DNA of 62,882 nucleotides, counting the filler, from Neoconidiobolus thromboides FSU 785 (Eukaryota > Fungi > Entomophthoromycota), in NCBI GenBank assembly GCA_025603075.1. It is 11 parts of 11 records of this genome, joined end to end, with 100 filler letters (N's around TTAATTAATTAA, not from the genome) between each part and the next. Parts side by side here need not be neighbours in the genome. Positions count along the whole stretch, not along the records: positions 12,856 to 22,791 come from MU626652.1; 10 more parts are not named here. One strand, given 5' to 3'. The number at the start of each line of letters is the position of its first letter. Position 1 is the stretch's first letter. The translations under genes were made by a program, and so were the position numbers. Below are positions 12,856 through 22,791 of this stretch, one piece after another. The notes beneath the pieces were generated by a model. It did not search any database. It saw nothing but the letters and a program-made list of their open reading frames with translations, and was not told where the DNA came from.

Positions 12856-12950
12856 GTTTTATCATCTTTTAAATATAAAACACTAAAACCTAATACTGAT
12901 ATAGCTTGTTTGTTATAATGATCTAAATTTATTGAACCTAGTCTTGTTCC
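12856..12950 (+). repeat. 95-bp exact terminal direct repeat of contig 12856-22791 (left copy)
   Basis: Identical to 22697-22791. Confidence 0.97.
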
Positions 12951-13225
12951 TATTTCCATATTTTGTTTAAAATCTAAAAATATTATACAACTTTTATTAT
13001 TTAATTATTTAATGGTTTCATCAAATATGTTTTTTTAAGTATCAGCACAAAATTTATGAAGTTTTTGTAAACCTTTCTCTTTATTGCAAATTTCTATTTC
13101 TGCTTTGTTTTTTATTACTATGTTTACTTTATTTTATTTTCAAATAACCTTTTTCTAACTGTATACTGGTCAATATATTACATGAATTTGTTTCATTTCT
13201 ACATTTTTGAAATTACTTAGTATAT

Positions 13226-13323
13226 GGGGATGTTTTTTTTGAATTCATTACTTTTTTCATCTTTAAGCGCTATTTGGGTGGAAAAGTTGTTAATAAAGCT
13301 CTTAAATACAAAAACACATCCCC
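13226..13323 (+). mobile_element. MITE A copy inserted in transposase pseudogene
   Basis: ATAT/ATAT flanks; removing element plus 4 bp restores IFFKY-ILSNF frame. Confidence 0.92.
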
Positions 13324-13684
13324 ATATATTTAAAAAATATTGATCTAGCTACTGCTTGATCTTTTAAATCATTAAAATATTTACCATATATCATTCTTTT
13401 ACTTTTATTTAATATATCTATCTTATCTGATGAATATTTACTATCATTATTTTTTTTGTTAGATCTCGATGAAATAGTTGAATCATTTAGTAAATACTGT
13501 ATAATAGTTTCAATTTGCTTATTAATTTTCTTTGTATTTTTAATAATAGGTTGCAATGGTAATATTTTATTATCATTATTACTTATTTTTAAATAATTAT
13601 ATTGATCTATATTTATATTAAACCCAAAACTTTTGCATTCATCAAAAGAATATACTGAAGCTATAGTTGATAATAACACTACTT

Positions 13685-13783
13685 GGGAGTGTTTTTTTTG
13701 GCTTCATTACTTTTTCCATCTTTTAAGCGCTATTTGAGTGGAAAAATTATTAGTAAAATTCTTAAATACAAAAATACATCCCC
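13685..13783 (+). mobile_element. MITE A copy with ACTT target duplication
   Basis: ACTT|GGGAGTG...CATCCCC|ACTT direct repeat. Confidence 0.92.
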
Positions 13784-14579
13784 ACTTATTGATTTTTATT
13801 TCCTGTTTCCCTCAAAGCACTAATTTTATACATTGCTTGATTAAGTTTATTATTATCGATAGTAAACTTTGATAATATATCATTTTTTGTTTTACTTTAT
13901 TATGAAATTCCATAAACCCTGGGTTGTTATAAGTAGCTCTTAAAATCGATGTAAATGAATTACAATGTTTATATTGTGTATTTCTTCCTATTGTATTAAA
14001 ATTTTCAGAAATTATATTTCGGAGTTTAGTTATGAAAGTTTGCATTTTATTTTTATTTCAAAGAATAAAGTCAAATAACTGTATTTATATAATTATATAA
14101 TCATATAGTTATATATTATATATCTATTAAATATCTAATAGAAATAACATAAAACATAATTAGAAAAATTAGCTATTTAAGAAAAAGAGGGAACAGTTAA
14201 AATAAGTTTTTTAAGCTAAAGAGATTAATTTTAAGCTTTTTAAATTAAATTGCCACATTAAAGATACAAATTCAAAACTTAAAATTTGGATTAATTTCTA
14301 AGTAAATTCTGAAAGTAATTTGGACAGCCCTAAATATCGAAATTTTATATCAATAACTATCTTTTATTTGAATTTAGCAGTCTTTATGGTTAATATTTGC
14401 CCAAAAAAAGAGAACCTTTGGGAATACCTAACGATTTATAAAGAAACCTATCCTTAGATTTTTCACCTTAATCACTAGGTGTAATTTAAAGAAAATAAAA
14501 TATAGATACAATTATTTATTACGAGTTTATATTTGAGTGACTATGTTTTGCTTTTGAGATATGGATGCTTAACTCTTTA

Positions 14580-15752
14580 TTAAATTGGAACAGAAAATAC
14601 AAAGTAAGGAGCCTTCCTACCCTCGACGCCGTTATTAAAAGCAGGTCTACGGTTCATTTGATTTGCTGTAATGAATAAGGTACTGTTATAGATAGCAAGA
14701 GTATCTGGCCAAAGTAAGTTTGGATGACGAACAACAAGGGAAAGTTCCTTAGTATTAGGATTAAACTTGGTAATAGAATTTTGCTCAAGGTTGGTTAAGT
14801 AAATATTGCCATCTTTATCAGAAATCAAACCAGCAGTTGCTGAACCTTTATCCAAAATTTCAACTTTAACAAGTTTAGATAAAGCACTTTCGCTTAATCT
14901 TCTGTTAATTAAAGCCTTAACAGGTACTGAGTAAAGGGAGCGAGAAGATACAGGGGCATAGTAGAGAGTTTTTTTATCTTTTGAGATTTCAATTCCGTTG
15001 GAGTGGACTTTTGCAGGTTGACCTCCAGGTTTTACAATTTTCCCTTCAATAGTTAAAGCAAAATTATCAAGAGCAGTAGTAGAAGCATGATTATTTAATC
15101 TACGGAATGATTCTCCAGTTCTCAAATTTAAAACTGCAATTCCAGGAACAGAGGCATCAGTAATAAAACCATAGTTTAATTCAGCATCAAAACGAATGTC
15201 CTGGAGCTGGGACGCTGGATATTCTACATTTTTAGGGAAGGTATATGTAGCTAATAAGTAATCATACTTAAGGTCAAATACATAAAATACAGTTCGAGAA
15301 ACAGGACGAGCACCATTAGTTACTCTTCCGGTATCTAAAACCCATAAACGATCTAAAGGATCGACATATATAGCATGGATGTTATTGAAGGAATGGTCAT
15401 ACTTGACATTATTCATTGAAGCATTAGGATAATAATATTCTTTGCCATTTTTGATTTCTACCAAACTACGTCCCTTGTTTTGTTCCCAATGTGGATAACT
15501 AATGAACTTACGTCCTTTACTTGAAACAGCAACTGAGATAGGGAATTGATCATAAACAGCTTTCTCCACTTTAAGATTAGGTCCAGCGGATGAGCTTTCC
15601 AAAGCTGAGTGTTGCTCTTGAGCTTGGGCTAATTCTCGGGTGAAAACATCCTCAAGTACTAAAGAGGGTTCGAAGTTTACTTCAGTTGCCCCTTCAACTA
15701 CTTTCAAGCTGATGCCTAATAAAATGGTATATAAAAGGCTTACAAACTTCAT
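14580..15752 (-). CDS. Secreted yellow / major royal jelly protein family beta-propeller
   Basis: Signal peptide; DRLWVLDTG, GFITDAS, NGIEIS and WPDT motifs; intronless. Confidence 0.85.
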   Translation of the reverse strand: MKFVSLLYTILLGISLKVVEGATEVNFEPSLVLEDVFTRELAQAQEQHSALESSSAGPNLKVEKAVYDQFPISVAVSSKGRKFISYPHWEQNKGRSLVEIKNGKEYYYPNASMNNVKYDHSFNNIHAIYVDPLDRLWVLDTGRVTNGARPVSRTVFYVFDLKYDYLLATYTFPKNVEYPASQLQDIRFDAELNYGFITDASVPGIAVLNLRTGESFRRLNNHASTTALDNFALTIEGKIVKPGGQPAKVHSNGIEISKDKKTLYYAPVSSRSLYSVPVKALINRRLSESALSKLVKVEILDKGSATAGLISDKDGNIYLTNLEQNSITKFNPNTKELSLVVRHPNLLWPDTLAIYNSTLFITANQMNRRPAFNNGVEGRKAPYFVFSVPI

Positions 15753-17324
15753 ATTAGTTAATTAAAAAATAAAAAAAGGTTAATCCAATTTTAATTTTTT
15801 AAATTTCGACTATTTATGTACTTTTGATACCCAAGTTATAATTATGCACTTAAACTGATTCCTTATTAAGAACAAACTTTAATTATCCAAATTTAATTAT
15901 TTTTTGAAGAGGTTTTTTACATTGTTTCTAATTAGAACTGTTAGATTGACAATATTTGAATAAAACTACACATTAAAAGAAGTAGATATAATTAATTGAT
16001 ATATAATATTTGTTTTTATATATAATAAATAACATTAAAAGCTACGACATCAAGTTTTAGACTTATTTATCTCTATATGCTAGTAACAAACTATTTTTAG
16101 TTCCATATTTTAAGTTCAATATTGAACCTTATTTACAATATTTACGGATGATAGCATTTGACTAATCTAAATTAACGCTATTACTTTTATAGCTATTATT
16201 GCTCTTTATATTTGATATTTTGAAATACTATATTTTACTTTTAAAAAACATTCATAATACTTTTTTTAATAGTTATTTCTTATAACGAGAATGATAATTT
16301 AATGTCAAATGTCCATATAGCTGGTTTCTAAAATCAGTGAGTAATTTACTTCTAATCAACCTTACTAAATATACAAATTATATCATAATACTTCTTAAAA
16401 ACAAAAGTTAATTTACAAACAAGAAATGATACTTATATATTAAATATATACTATTTAGATAGCTTTGAAGTAAGACATAATACACATTTACTAATCAATT
16501 TAAGATGTTTTAATAGCCATAACGTTTTGTTATTTTTTTCATAAATAATACTAAATATTTTATAAAGATAATGAGCTAATTTAGAACTAATATATTAAAC
16601 TACAATTTAAATAGAACAAAAAAAATACTTTATCAAAATTCTCCTATAAAATGTCAGATTTTCCTTAAGATATAATATATAGAATTATAATTAGTTCCCA
16701 TCAACCTATTCATTTAATGAAATATGTCCTATAATATTATTTGATTTATCAATTAATTCTATATGATACACCCAAAATTTGAAGATTGAGCGAGTTATAT
16801 AAAATTAACCCTTCCTTATTTATTTAAAGCAAAAAAACAGAGTCTTTATAAAACTAAAAATAAAATTAAAACTATAATAATTTAATATATTAGGTTAATA
16901 AATAGGTTAGTATATAAGTAGCAACTAATATATATGTATACATAGACTCTATTTTATATCAGATGATATCATATTTTAATTTTTTATAGCTGAAGAAGTT
17001 ACAACATCTCAAATTATTGATAACAATTCAAGATTGGTATAGAGACATTTGAATTTTAAGTTTAAATAAACATTCTAGTTTAATAACTTTTTCTTTCGGG
17101 TAAAGGTTGAAAAATAAAACCTCCTTCAAATAAAAACTAATTTGCACATTTAACTCGGTTCTTTTCAATCTATTTAGTAAATGATATGAGTTAAAAATGA
17201 TTGGATTGCTTTTGAGTATTACAATGGTATTTGAATGAATTTTCAAAGAATAAACAATTTTAAAGTATTCCAAATAACTTGAACTTTTATCTTCTCATTA
17301 AACACTATCAACATAGTATTATAT

Positions 17325-17419
17325 GGGGGTATTTTTTGGCTTCATCACTTTCTCTATCTTTTAAGCACTATTTGAGCGAAAAATTCATTAGTAAAATCCT
17401 TACACAAAAATACATCCAC
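17325..17419 (+). mobile_element. MITE A copy
   Basis: ATAT/ATAT flanks. Confidence 0.88.
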
Positions 17420-19076
17420 ATATACTGCAAATCATTGTTTGAATTAAAACATCAAAAATAATTTTACTTTATTTTTTAAAATTTTGAAATTAATATTAAC
17501 TTACGAACTTCCTTTCAATAACAGTAATGTACACAAAAATATTCATTAAATTCAAATGTTTATAATTCAAATATTAAAAGCTGCTTCAATAAACTAAGAA
17601 CATTGGAGTTAAAAGACATAAAAGTAAACTATACATTTTTATAGAATAAATTATAAAAACAAATTTCATGATTTAACTATTTATTTATGTTTTCTAAATC
17701 CCAATATTTATTTATATATATAATTTTGCAATGTCTCTGTTAACCTCAATCTTGTACTCTTTAAAATCTTTATTATAATAGTAAACAAACGAATAAGAAA
17801 ATATTTAAAACTATTATCTCCAGTATATACAAGCTTTTAAAACATACTATTATGTACAACTTATCCACTATTATATATGATGTTGAAATAAGATTTGTTG
17901 ATATAGAAAATATTTCTATACAGAAAAAAAATACAACAACACACATTTTTCATAAATGTTCCAGGAATACTTTTTTGATGTGTGAATTAATGATTTAAAT
18001 AAAATAACAGCTCAAATCCCCAAAATTATGATTGATTTTTGGATTATTTTAAGCGAACTAAAATATTAATTGGCTAAAGAAACTCAAAGAATAAATTATT
18101 AAACAAATAATACATGATAAAAAATAAAACTATAGATTTCATATTACAATATCAATATTATTGTAGTTACAAATTATACAAACTTGTTTAATAGAATCTT
18201 ATTAACATTAGAGCTGTGTTTAAAATATAGTTTTTATAACTAAGTTGTTTTCTCCAAATGCAATTTTACTTAAATTGTATATTTAATTTAGTTTTGCGTT
18301 AAATTAATGCACGCTTTGGCCAATGACATTCTAAAGATTTCACTTTCAAAAATAGCAACTTAAAATTTGAAAAGCTTTATTTAAAAACGAGGAAATGATT
18401 TTAAAAACAACTTTTAAGTTATAAAAAAAATTAGATACTCTAATTTGTCAATGCTTTTGATAAAAGTGCTAAGTTTGTATTTTCCCAAGCCAAAATATAT
18501 TGCTTTCTTTAGTAGATAATCGAAATATATTTTTCTATGATATTAATTGTTCTAATTTTTAAAAATACATTAGTAAAAAAAAACTATTTTTAGCTATTGG
18601 TCAAATGTTCCATTTGTGTTAAAACTGTATTCAATTACTGCTAATAAAAAAATTAATTGTATTTAAAATAAAGTGTAAGCATATTGAAAATAAAGCTATA
18701 GTAGCTATAAACTTATACGTGAACTACAAACTAAAAGTTTATACTCCTATTCAATAGTAATCTAGAACCGTATTGTTTTTGTATGCTTTATATTAAAACT
18801 ACTCCTTAATTTTGTATTTCCTAAAAATATCATCAAGAATAACAACTAATCACACAATTAATTTTATTGTTTACTTTGATATAATAATACATACAAACGT
18901 AGTAAAATCAATCCAAAATAATATTATATTCATTTCACTTTAAATAAAAACAGGTTAAAGTAAAACAATAAGGTTGATCTTCCAATACATTAGATTTCAG
19001 AAGTGAAAACAAGCTAAGTAATACGGAAATAAGTTAATAATTCGCGTTATGTTATTTATTATTAACTATTAGAATA

Positions 19077-20078
19077 TTAGAAACGAAAGAAAAAATGGCG
19101 TATATTCATAAGTATTTCAACCATTGTTAGTTTGATCTGCTCATGTAGAACCAAAACCATTAATGGATTCATTACTCCTAAGAATATTAAAAGTCCTGCG
19201 GTTACGGCATCAGCCTCTATAGATCTTACACTCACCGTTATTAATTCATGTATTTCAAAACCAATAGTTGGAAATAAACATAAATAATAAAAGAATAGCA
19301 TAATCCCTATCTTTATGTATACTTTACGACTCAATTTCTTAACATTAACTTCAGGTATTTCTTCATGGTATCCTATAGTTTTATCGTCAGACAAATTAGA
19401 TAAAGCGATCGGAGAAACTTTTTTGAGTGCTTTTTTATGTACTGTGGCAATTGCGGTATAACAGAATGATACTATAACTAAAGTTGATAGAAAGAAAGTC
19501 AATTGGAATATTTGTGCAGCCATCACTAATGGATCTATGTGAAGCGCATCTACTAGCATACATCTTCCGATAGGCATTTTGAAAAACTTTGATTGAGCTC
19601 CAACTGCAATACAAAATACTAGCATAATAAGCATAGGAACACCACCTAACAAGCTCCAAAATAAAAGTGATTTCCCTTTTCCCTCCTTAGTTGAAATGAC
19701 TGTATCATATCTTGAATAAGCTAAAATAGCAACCATCCAAATAGATGAGAAGATAAAAAAAGAAGTTGTACTTCCACGTATATGACAATCAGCAGGATGA
19801 TTTGCAAATATATTAAGGTAGAATCTTATATTTCCATACAATGTAGCTGCTGCATTCGCTGCGTCTAATATGGTCAGTACTAATACTGCGATACCACTTA
19901 CATTGAACAATAAGCTTCTACGATATAAAATAACTCCAAGGACTGCAAGATTTAATATTAATGATATTATACCTTCACTAAATAAAATATACTTTCTGAC
20001 TACATTTACTACTTCTGGGGCTGGTGGAGCTGCCTGTATTAAATTTACAGTATTATTCATTTTAATGTTAAAAGTCAA
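19077..20078 (-). CDS. 7TM receptor, rhodopsin/class-A-like GPCR
   Basis: Seven hydrophobic segments; AYSRY (DRY-like); MNPLMVLVLHE (NPxxY-like); same family as 3215-4201. Confidence 0.75.
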   Translation of the reverse strand: MTFNIKMNNTVNLIQAAPPAPEVVNVVRKYILFSEGIISLILNLAVLGVILYRRSLLFNVSGIAVLVLTILDAANAAATLYGNIRFYLNIFANHPADCHIRGSTTSFFIFSSIWMVAILAYSRYDTVISTKEGKGKSLLFWSLLGGVPMLIMLVFCIAVGAQSKFFKMPIGRCMLVDALHIDPLVMAAQIFQLTFFLSTLVIVSFCYTAIATVHKKALKKVSPIALSNLSDDKTIGYHEEIPEVNVKKLSRKVYIKIGIMLFFYYLCLFPTIGFEIHELITVSVRSIEADAVTAGLLIFLGVMNPLMVLVLHEQIKLTMVEILMNIRHFFFRF

Positions 20079-21384
20079 GGTTTAGATTGTAGTTCAACTG
20101 TTTATATATCATATTTGGACATATATAAATTTAGACTTCGAGAATAAATAATGCATACCCAATAATAATATTCATGTAGTTCCCATCGTTTTTCAAATTG
20201 TAGATTTAAATCATTTCAAAATAAGATTTGTATTTAACATTGCAGTACACAGACATTCATCTATTTCTTAATGGTAAACGTATTTTTGTTATAAATAGAA
20301 CAAACTTTAAAATTTAATCCAATTATTTTTTTTCATTGCTTTAGAATCTCGAACTTTAATTGCGGATGTTTTTATGTACAAGGTTGTTATTATTTCCTTA
20401 AAATAGTCTGTTACCTTCATTTACTACTTCTACTTTAATTAAAAAGCTGTACTTGATTATTTTTGAAGCTTCACAAGTTAACTTTGAACTATTTTAATAT
20501 TTTTATCATAGGATATATTTGATATATTTCATCAATCAAGTGAACAAGAACGAGATTTTTATGAATTTTAAAATATATTATAGAATAAAAAGTTGAATAT
20601 AAAAATTTACCAAAAGATAAAAAGGCTAAAGTACAATCAAAGCTATAATTTTGTAACATGACATTATTGTTATGCTTTATTTTTATGCTAATTAATTCTA
20701 AATATAGAAGGCTTTTGGAACATGATAATACTGTTCAGTAATAAATGTATTTTCACCGAATATAGTAAAGCCAAATGTAAGATTCTCTTTATAATAAAAT
20801 TTTATCTATTTGAATACAAAGCATAAAATATAGAACATTTATAGCTTTAAAGTTATAACTTATTAACAGACTACTAAAAAAAGGAAAGGTACTTTTTTCT
20901 CAAAATTAGAAGGTTAAGGAGGTTTGATAACTTATCTTATATTAACTTGTCCCTATTTTGCAATTTGTTTAACATAACTTATCAAATACTATTATTTAGA
21001 ATTAAGCAAGTAAATAATATCATCAGTTAAATAAAATAATATTAAAATTTAAAAATTAAAAGAAAATACTAATTTTATTTTATAACAGAGTTGTGCTCAA
21101 AATAGTTTTTGTAAAATGATACAAAAGGTCTAAAATAGCAACTTTTATCAAACATGTTTTATATCCAAATTATATGCTTACAATATAAGTTGCTATAAAA
21201 AGTATATTATTAGAAATAATTTGTTTCCAAATTTTAACAAACTAACAAAATTAAATTCTTTGTTAAAAACCAGAAGTATCCGACAGTTTTAAATTATTTT
21301 ACAATTTATATTATAATTAACAAAATTTCTATTAAATTTAATAGAAATTCCTAGATTAGTAAGACCTTTACTAATATAACATAT

Positions 21385-21482
21385 GGGAGTGTTTTTTTAA
21401 CTTCATTATTTTTTCCATTTTTTAAGCTCTATTTAAGCGGAAAATTTGTTAGTAAAATTCTTAAACACAAAAATACATCCCC
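21385..21482 (+). mobile_element. MITE A copy
   Basis: ATAT/ATAT flanks. Confidence 0.9.
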
Positions 21483-21932
21483 ATATGTTAATATTAACCA
21501 AAGTTGTATTATGTAAATAAATACATACTCTCACAAAACTTCATTGGGAAGTATTTATTATTGACTTATTTATAGCCAACATTATAGATTTGCTATCAAA
21601 TAAATAAGCTATTTTAATATTATAATTGCATTATCAATATATTAGTAAGTTAATAAATATCTGCATGGAAGAGATTGGTTAGCCCCAAAACTATAATTAA
21701 TCACCCCTATGTAATACAGGTAATATAGTAATAGTTTTTACTTGTTATTACAATTGCTTACTCTTTGACCATTTATTCTTAGCTATTAATGATTTAAGTA
21801 ATATTAACATTTAATAATCTATTTCTATCATTTAACAGATTACCCACTTAGTAAATACCAAAAATTTTGAATTCCCTGTTATTTTCGTAAGTCAAGATGG
21901 GATTGATTTTTTAATTTTTCTATTTTCTATTT

Positions 21933-22030
21933 GTGGATGTTTTTTTGGCTTCATCGCTTTTTCCATCTTTTAGACACCATTTGAGTAGAAAAATTCTTAG
22001 AAAAATTCTTAAATACAAAAATACATCCTC
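21933..22030 (+). mobile_element. MITE A copy with ATTT target duplication
   Basis: ATTT|GTGGATG...CATCCTC|ATTT. Confidence 0.9.
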
Positions 22031-22539
22031 ATTTTTTATTTTCTATAGACTCTATAAGTTTAATTGGAATTACATCACTTTCTTTTATCTATTATATATT
22101 GGATAATGATATAATTTATTGTTATGTTTAATATGTAAATACTTCTTAGTCTCTTGTATCTCTATTATTTTTTTTGCATTTTTGTTTCTTTCATGCTTTT
22201 TAAAAAATTATATCTGTTTTCCCATTATTGACAGTTGGGTTGTTGATTTTATTATGTTCGCAAATAAAAGTCCCAAATTCTGAAATTAATTGATTGATAT
22301 ACTCTATTTTACCTAATGCTTCAAAACTACTTTTCTATTTTTAAATGTTTCCATGATGCTCAGCAAAAAAATTAAGATCAGTATTTAAGCTACTATTTAT
22401 TTTATGAATTTCAAATATATAATATAGGAATTCTTGGGATCTAGAATGATTTCCTGTATCTGCCCATATATTAGTTTTTGTAAACTTTTTAAATAAAAAC
22501 TCTGTAGAGATTAAATCAATTAAACAATCTCCTGCATAT

Positions 22540-22638
22540 GAGGATGTATTTTTTCATTTAAAAATTTTATCAACAATCTTTCCACCCAAATAACGCTTAA
22601 AAAATAGAGAAAGTAATGAAACCAAAAAAAACATTTCC
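22540..22638 (-). mobile_element. MITE A copy inserted in transposase pseudogene
   Basis: ATAT/ATAT flanks; removal restores HDSTY-AGDCL frame. Confidence 0.92.
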
Positions 22639-22696
22639 ATATGTTGAATCATGATTTAATGTTTCAGATGAATAATCAAATTAAACTTTGCCTATT

Positions 22697-22791
22697 GTTT
22701 TATCATCTTTTAAATATAAAACACTAAAACCTAATACTGATATAGCTTGTTTGTTATAATGATCTAAATTTATTGAACCTAGTCTTGTTCC
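22697..22791 (+). repeat. 95-bp exact terminal direct repeat (right copy)
   Basis: Identical to 12856-12950. Confidence 0.97.

Follow-up and report, generated by a model that had tools for sequence, protein, structure and literature searches.

The stretch of DNA analysed here (the window; 62,882 nucleotides joined from 11 records of the Neoconidiobolus thromboides FSU 785 genome, GCA_025603075.1) includes a contig, MU626652.1, that begins and ends with the same 95 bases. Our analysis is based on the assembled sequence of this contig, which occupies window positions 12856-22791 (9,936 bp, no N). The only intact long open reading frames (ORFs) of the unit so delimited, both on the minus strand, are a gene of the MRJP/yellow family and a gene for a G-protein-coupled receptor (GPCR), and a decayed pseudogene with likeness to DUF7869 proteins runs through the point at which the two contig ends can be joined. 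Considering the evidence collectively, we regard the identical ends as most likely the same bases written twice by an assembler in writing out a closed loop; as to what closed the loop, we tentatively favour a head-to-tail tandem array in the chromosome.

Identical contig ends and the pseudogene across the closure

The two terminal copies agree at each of their 95 positions, a match far beyond chance, and both lie flush with the contig ends, with the artificial N linkers of the window directly outside (Table 1). The identical ends and the 9,841-bp unit, both part of the original prediction, hold up on examination. Elsewhere in the circularised unit, the longest exact repeat on either strand measures 27 bp, and the unit therefore constitutes one unbranched path at any K > 27. 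A sensitive self-comparison with blastn returned one short repeat, present six times at 75-89% identity, together with two small palindromes and nothing else. With repeats so diverged and exact repeats so short inside the unit, the idea that two independent diverged element copies share 95 bp by chance was rejected.

Table 1. Features of the contig in window coordinates
Feature	Position	Strand	Remarks
Left terminal copy of 95-bp overlap	12856..12950	.	Exact match to 22697-22791, flush with contig start
Right terminal copy of 95-bp overlap	22697..22791	.	Exact match to 12856-12950, flush with contig end
Closed-path unit, single turn, 9,841 bp	12856..22696	.	Start-to-start spacing 9841
Decayed DUF7869-like (putative transposase) pseudogene, N-terminal and middle part	12856..13703	-	MITE-like insert at ~13222-13330
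Pseudogene continuation past the closure	22302..22791	-	MITE-like insert at ~22535-22645
Pseudogene piece	13305-13703		Aligns to P0131 residues 80-206
Pseudogene piece (left contig end)	12858-13004		Aligns to P0131 271-318 and P0152 272-318
Pseudogene piece (just past the closure)	22645-22680		Aligns to P0131 325-336
Pseudogene piece	22344-22553		Aligns to P0131 336-399
MRJP/yellow-family gene, intact, intronless, secreted product, 390 aa	14580..15752	-	PF03022 match; N-terminal signal-like segment
Family-A (rhodopsin-type) seven-transmembrane receptor gene, intact, intronless, 327 aa from first ATG (20060)	19077..20060	-	PF00001
MITE-like copy 1	13222..13330	.	Alignment, self-blastn, internal inverted ends; inside pseudogene
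MITE-like copy 2	13684..13790	.	Inverted ends, alignment, self-blastn
MITE-like copy 3	17321..17424	.	Inverted ends, alignment, self-blastn
MITE-like copy 4	21381..21489	.	Inverted ends, alignment, self-blastn
MITE-like copy 5	21938..22042	.	Inverted ends, alignment, self-blastn
MITE-like copy 6, opposite orientation	22535..22645	.	Inverted ends, alignment, self-blastn; inside pseudogene

The relationship between the two ends is clarified by the pseudogene. Along the minus strand, first between about 13703 and 12856 and then past the closure from 22791 to about 22300, the DNA holds one long reading frame with many stops, the translation of which runs ...LGFSVLYLKDDK up to the closure and TIGKV*FDYSSETLNHDS beyond it. 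The order in which the pieces of this frame map onto the related protein P0131 (Table 1) was also found on P0126, P0127, P0142 and P0152. On the circularly joined DNA, tblastn gave a single in-frame alignment over the closure for at least 15 homologous proteins, exemplified by P0131, whose residues 251-338 align from window position 13064 to 22639; the closure connects residues ~318 and ~325 of one reading frame. The reading through the junction that had been proposed earlier is thereby borne out, in translation and in the alignments alike. These alignments place the closure at an arbitrary internal point of a single colinear, decayed copy. The remnant is considered old because it has accumulated many stops and two secondary insertions.

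These results alter the argument that had been built on the junction. The original prediction treated the identical ends as belonging to two independent old copies of the element; according to the homologue alignments, each unit holds a single decayed copy, which is colinear with the relatives. It had further envisaged a transposon-bounded cassette and, at the junction, a hybrid made by recombination; neither is supported, since each unit holds just one element remnant, and this remnant has no recognisable ends. When inverted repeats were sought around the pseudogene, nothing emerged beyond chance matches in AT-rich DNA, none of them longer than 11 bp; terminal inverted repeats, element ends and target duplications were likewise not found, and the comparison of flanks in the original prediction (CATT versus AAAT) was not reproduced.

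Genes and repeats of the unit

Base composition divides the unit, with a GC content of ~20% in the intergenic DNA as against 32-35% in the two genes. Rfam and tRNA (transfer RNA) scans of the 9.9-kb piece gave no matches, and it is therefore not a ribosomal DNA (rDNA) unit or an organelle fragment. Mitochondrial origin was ruled out in addition on the nuclear type of the genes and the lack of tRNA and ribosomal RNA (rRNA) genes, the published mitogenome being a separate circle of 35 kb.

The MRJP-family protein scores 121 bits with the Pfam model PF03022, whose cut-off is 19.8 (E 7.5e-35), and the signal-like segment at the N-terminus of the protein is hydrophobic. Closest to it are two proteins encoded by N. 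thromboides FSU 785 itself, a species formerly placed in Conidiobolus (85% and 77% identity), followed by one from Basidiobolus ranarum (55%) and then by bacterial proteins related to L-dopachrome tautomerase or YvrE (~38%), mostly from Actinomycetota. Beyond Neoconidiobolus and Basidiobolus, the protein is thus nearest to bacterial proteins and not to the insect yellow/MRJP proteins, and among solved structures the uncharacterised 2qe8 is the nearest (2e-16), with honeybee MRJP1 behind it (6e-08). By its sequence relationships, the protein is of a bacterial type common to Entomophthorales and Basidiobolus, and an old bacterial origin of the zoopagomycote MRJP clade is possible. Relatives of ~30% identity, carried by short contigs, were all that a metagenome scan with the protein recovered, and none of them represented a syntenic locus. 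The public model of the gene is partial (334 aa), without the first 56 residues that include the signal-like segment; the paralogue P0003 has the same length of 334 aa and is labelled "partial" by its source.

The receptor ORF spans 19077-20078. Residues 43-305 of its product match the Pfam family 7tm_1 (PF00001) with 37.2 bits against a cut-off of 30.5. A word search returned a sole relative, a "family A GPCR-like protein" of N. thromboides FSU 785 (64% identical), and similarity to solved receptors was marginal (angiotensin AT2 receptor and the jumping-spider opsin kumopsin; E 0.04-0.2). On these comparisons the receptor appears to be lineage-specific. The description of the two genes as being of host-interaction type, offered in the original prediction, is conjecture: the MRJP protein belongs to the bacterial L-dopachrome-tautomerase/YvrE-like kind, and the GPCR is without a characterised relative.

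For the family of the pseudogene, the 70-aa piece at 22344-22553 was the most useful probe. A feature search of the ESM Atlas pointed, as a lead only, to clusters of DUF7869, and an exhaustive search of representative proteins gave 30 matches. Four of the top matches (P0123, P0129, P0137 and P0141) were set aside as false, being repetitive, matching in several stretches and carrying Pfam domains of unrelated kinds. What remained were "hypothetical proteins" 150-580 aa in length, among them proteins of Furculomyces boomerangus and Smittium angustum (Harpellales gut fungi, likewise Zoopagomycota), together with several Logan contigs, at 36-52% identity. The Smittium relative P0142 scored 20 bits with DUF7869 (PF25273), under the cut-off of 26, and a Pfam search with eight pieces of the pseudogene and of ORFs gave no significant match, the DUF7869 threshold again not being reached. 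The family is probably an unannotated, DUF7869-like one derived from transposases. Its motif order presumably resembles that of DDE-type eukaryotic elements. The pseudogene shares with the transposase-like eukaryotic proteins that contain DUF7869 the lead from the ESM Atlas and the colinearity of its pieces with the relatives from Smittium and Furculomyces. It differs from them in being a dead copy, broken by many stops and by two MITE-like inserts. The 466-aa model P0124 from Furculomyces boomerangus is matched twice by the 70-aa piece, at residues 169-235 and 285-351, and therefore contains either an internally duplicated segment or two copies of the element fused together.

The six-fold repeat of the unit is a non-coding element of ~107 bp that recurs at 75-89% identity within 9.8 kb and has inverted ends of the form (C/T)ATATGGGGATG...CATCCCCATAT(A/G). 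Short (under 600 bp), non-coding, multi-copy and bounded by terminal inverted repeats, it is in these respects like a miniature inverted-repeat transposable element (MITE). As read from the alignment, a TA target-site duplication fits some of the copies, and the flanks of other copies mismatch. At each of the two copies inside the pseudogene, the alignments with the homologues break off precisely at one edge of the insert and start again at the other. In consequence, the residues following ...NHDS (TYGNVFFGFITFSIF), which had been read earlier as transposase, are part of such an insertion and not of the gene. The unit also contains a perfect 26-bp palindrome at 21324-21349, and at 14054-14133 an AT-rich imperfect palindrome (~80 bp, 76% self-complementary) that adjoins a TTATATAA microsatellite (14085-14122).

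Assembler convention as the probable source of the 95-bp overlap

Two observations lead us to read the contig ends as the same bases written twice. One is that the closure falls at an arbitrary point of one colinear copy. The other is the number itself: by default, ALLPATHS-LG constructs unipaths with a K of 96 (PMC5905499). Paths that adjoin each other or close on themselves then share K-1 = 95 bases. The zygomycete genomes sequenced by Illumina at the Joint Genome Institute (JGI) were assembled with Velvet and then with AllPathsLG (PMC9391592; PMC10079182). The contigs that carry the N. thromboides paralogues of both genes measure only 28-40 kb, a size typical of short-read assembly. We propose that a graph assembler working at K=96 would have linearised a closed unbranched path, with the K-1 first bases repeated at the end. 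Each 9,841-bp unit would then comprise one 95-mer and one decayed DUF7869-like remnant, within which the contig was cut. Reads would join position 22696 to 22697-22791 and continue to 12951, any competing flanks having been lost in the cleaning of the graph. Directly seen in the sequence are the overlap, exact and flush, the colinear closure in frame, the one unbranched unit and its genes; which assembler and K were used, that the loop is isolated and how many copies exist are inferred.

The length of the overlap is informative also on how the loop was connected. Were the loop attached to flanking sequence through a repeat of length L, the repeat would supply its last K-1 bases to the beginning of the contig and its first K-1 to the end, so that prefix and suffix would be identical only if L were exactly K-1. 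A simple two-copy tandem duplication would leave an overlap set by the homology at the breakpoint, and not by K-1. An isolated closed path would give the K-1 overlap always, and the contig is therefore most likely an isolated cycle.

Writing out circular paths with such terminal redundancy is a well-known habit of graph assemblers. With the circular paths from de Bruijn-graph programs (ALLPATHS-LG at K=96 and ABySS at k=96; the same convention in SPAdes and MEGAHIT), the present contig shares an exact, flush overlap of 96-1 bases, a sequence continuous over the closure, and a cut point that is arbitrary with respect to the features. Loops of this sort are usually organelle genomes, plasmids, rDNA or satellites, whereas here two ordinary nuclear protein genes are involved.

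The literature on the sequencing weighs on the other side, as do two points on multiplicity. An eLife paper on Entomophthora cites Chang et al. 2022 for this genome. Of the 28 JGI genomes in Chang et al. 2022, only two are named as Illumina, and the others are described as PacBio/Falcon. In a contig built from long reads, the 95 bases would be a mere overhang and carry no special meaning. Multi-copy arrays of a gene-bearing unit of 9.8 kb are uncommon. The protein cluster of each of the two genes consists of one sequence from one contig, which is uninformative on copy number. A contig that slightly exceeds one unit, with the 95 bp as accidental overhang, would be a direct sample of a molecule or read overlap longer than one unit, and its 9.9 kb corresponds to about one read length of a 10-kb library. 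It would be coincidence, though, that the overlap is exactly K-1 of the standard short-read assembler of JGI; contigs of only 28-40 kb around the paralogues are atypical of a PacBio assembly of a small genome, and neither gene has a frameshift. We consider this long-read origin quite improbable.

Physical basis of the closed unit

What was at issue from the outset is whether the contig represents a circle or a tandem amplicon. The original prediction stands insofar as the sequence does close head to tail into a unit of 9,841 bp, so that either reading is still a legitimate one; of its supporting arguments, the one from two element copies fails, and those from a transposon-bounded segment and a recombinant hybrid are without support. 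Tandem amplicons and extrachromosomal circular DNA (eccDNA) are both known kinds of biology. Our tentative preference, held with somewhat less than even confidence, is for a chromosomal array in which the unit is repeated head to tail, from several to many times. Its junctions to the flanks, present in single copy, would be outweighed and pruned from the graph, as happens with rDNA arrays. The comparison with tandem amplifications that assemble as loops (rDNA, yeast arrays of CUP1 type) is apt regarding the head-to-tail unit of ~10 kb and the identity of the collapsed copies, but the present unit has no rRNA genes, amplification of an MRJP gene together with a GPCR gene has no known selective reason, and the multiplicity is here presumed.

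The same closed unbranched path would result from a free extrachromosomal circle of 9,841 bp, either eccDNA or a stable nuclear episome, the chromosomal copy being absent or far outnumbered. A circle is the simplest object devoid of any flanks, and the AT-rich intergenic DNA (~20% GC) could plausibly hold origin-like sequences. Against this, the intact ORFs (MRJP and GPCR only) include no replication or partition gene, the remaining pieces are without Pfam match, and the unit showed neither RNA genes nor any further hallmark of plasmids. Filamentous fungi very rarely have stable nuclear plasmids. Transient eccDNA, for its part, exists side by side with its chromosomal locus, and the graph would then be expected to show branches. 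Repeat-mediated eccDNA of fungi (LTR (long terminal repeat) and other repeat circles of yeast, and circles in Magnaporthe) resembles the present case in that the unit is compatible with a circle and closes in transposon-derived sequence. The cases differ in that only one element remnant occurs per unit here, with no parental pair of direct repeats visible, and in that the known eccDNAs, coexisting as they do with the locus of origin, seldom emerge from bulk DNA as clean isolated loops. A free circle is accordingly judged improbable, and its most specific form, a stable multi-copy nuclear episome that carries an MRJP gene and a lineage-specific GPCR gene and is maintained without a recognisable plasmid gene, very improbable.

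Finally, the genome may contain no head-to-tail junction at all. The contig would then be a linear single-copy segment between two identical, recently duplicated stretches from the pseudogene region, each of 96 bp or more, whose outer flanks were lost, or a ring closed wrongly. Flanks could vanish through coverage gaps in AT-rich DNA combined with tip pruning, and a false ring could arise by error of the scaffolder or in finishing; the linear case was already the simple alternative of the original prediction. With 20% GC between the genes and an assembly seemingly fragmented into contigs of 10-40 kb, dead ends near repeats are plausible, and the closure does lie in repeat-related sequence. The requirements are nonetheless considerable: an old, stop-ridden and MITE-invaded remnant must have been duplicated exactly, while the other repeats of the unit are only 75-89% identical, and both outer flanks must have broken off within tip length. 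Flanks that survived would be expected to give contig ends from different parts of the repeat and not one and the same 95-mer. We hold this explanation to be rather unlikely, and the chromosomal tandem array remains our tentative choice.

Should neither amplification nor episome be real, the practical lesson would be that an exact K-1 terminal overlap in a short-read contig reflects a habit of record writing and not a conserved pair of repeats. Terminal overlaps of K-1 should in general be compared with read depth ahead of any biological interpretation. If, on the other hand, high depth and a head-to-tail junction are true, the contig would represent a gene amplification or an episome in an early-diverging, insect-associated fungus. 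Amplification would involve a secreted enzyme-like protein together with a receptor, in a lineage whose copy-number plasticity has hardly been studied, and it would not be unprecedented; far greater surprise would attach to a stable episome.

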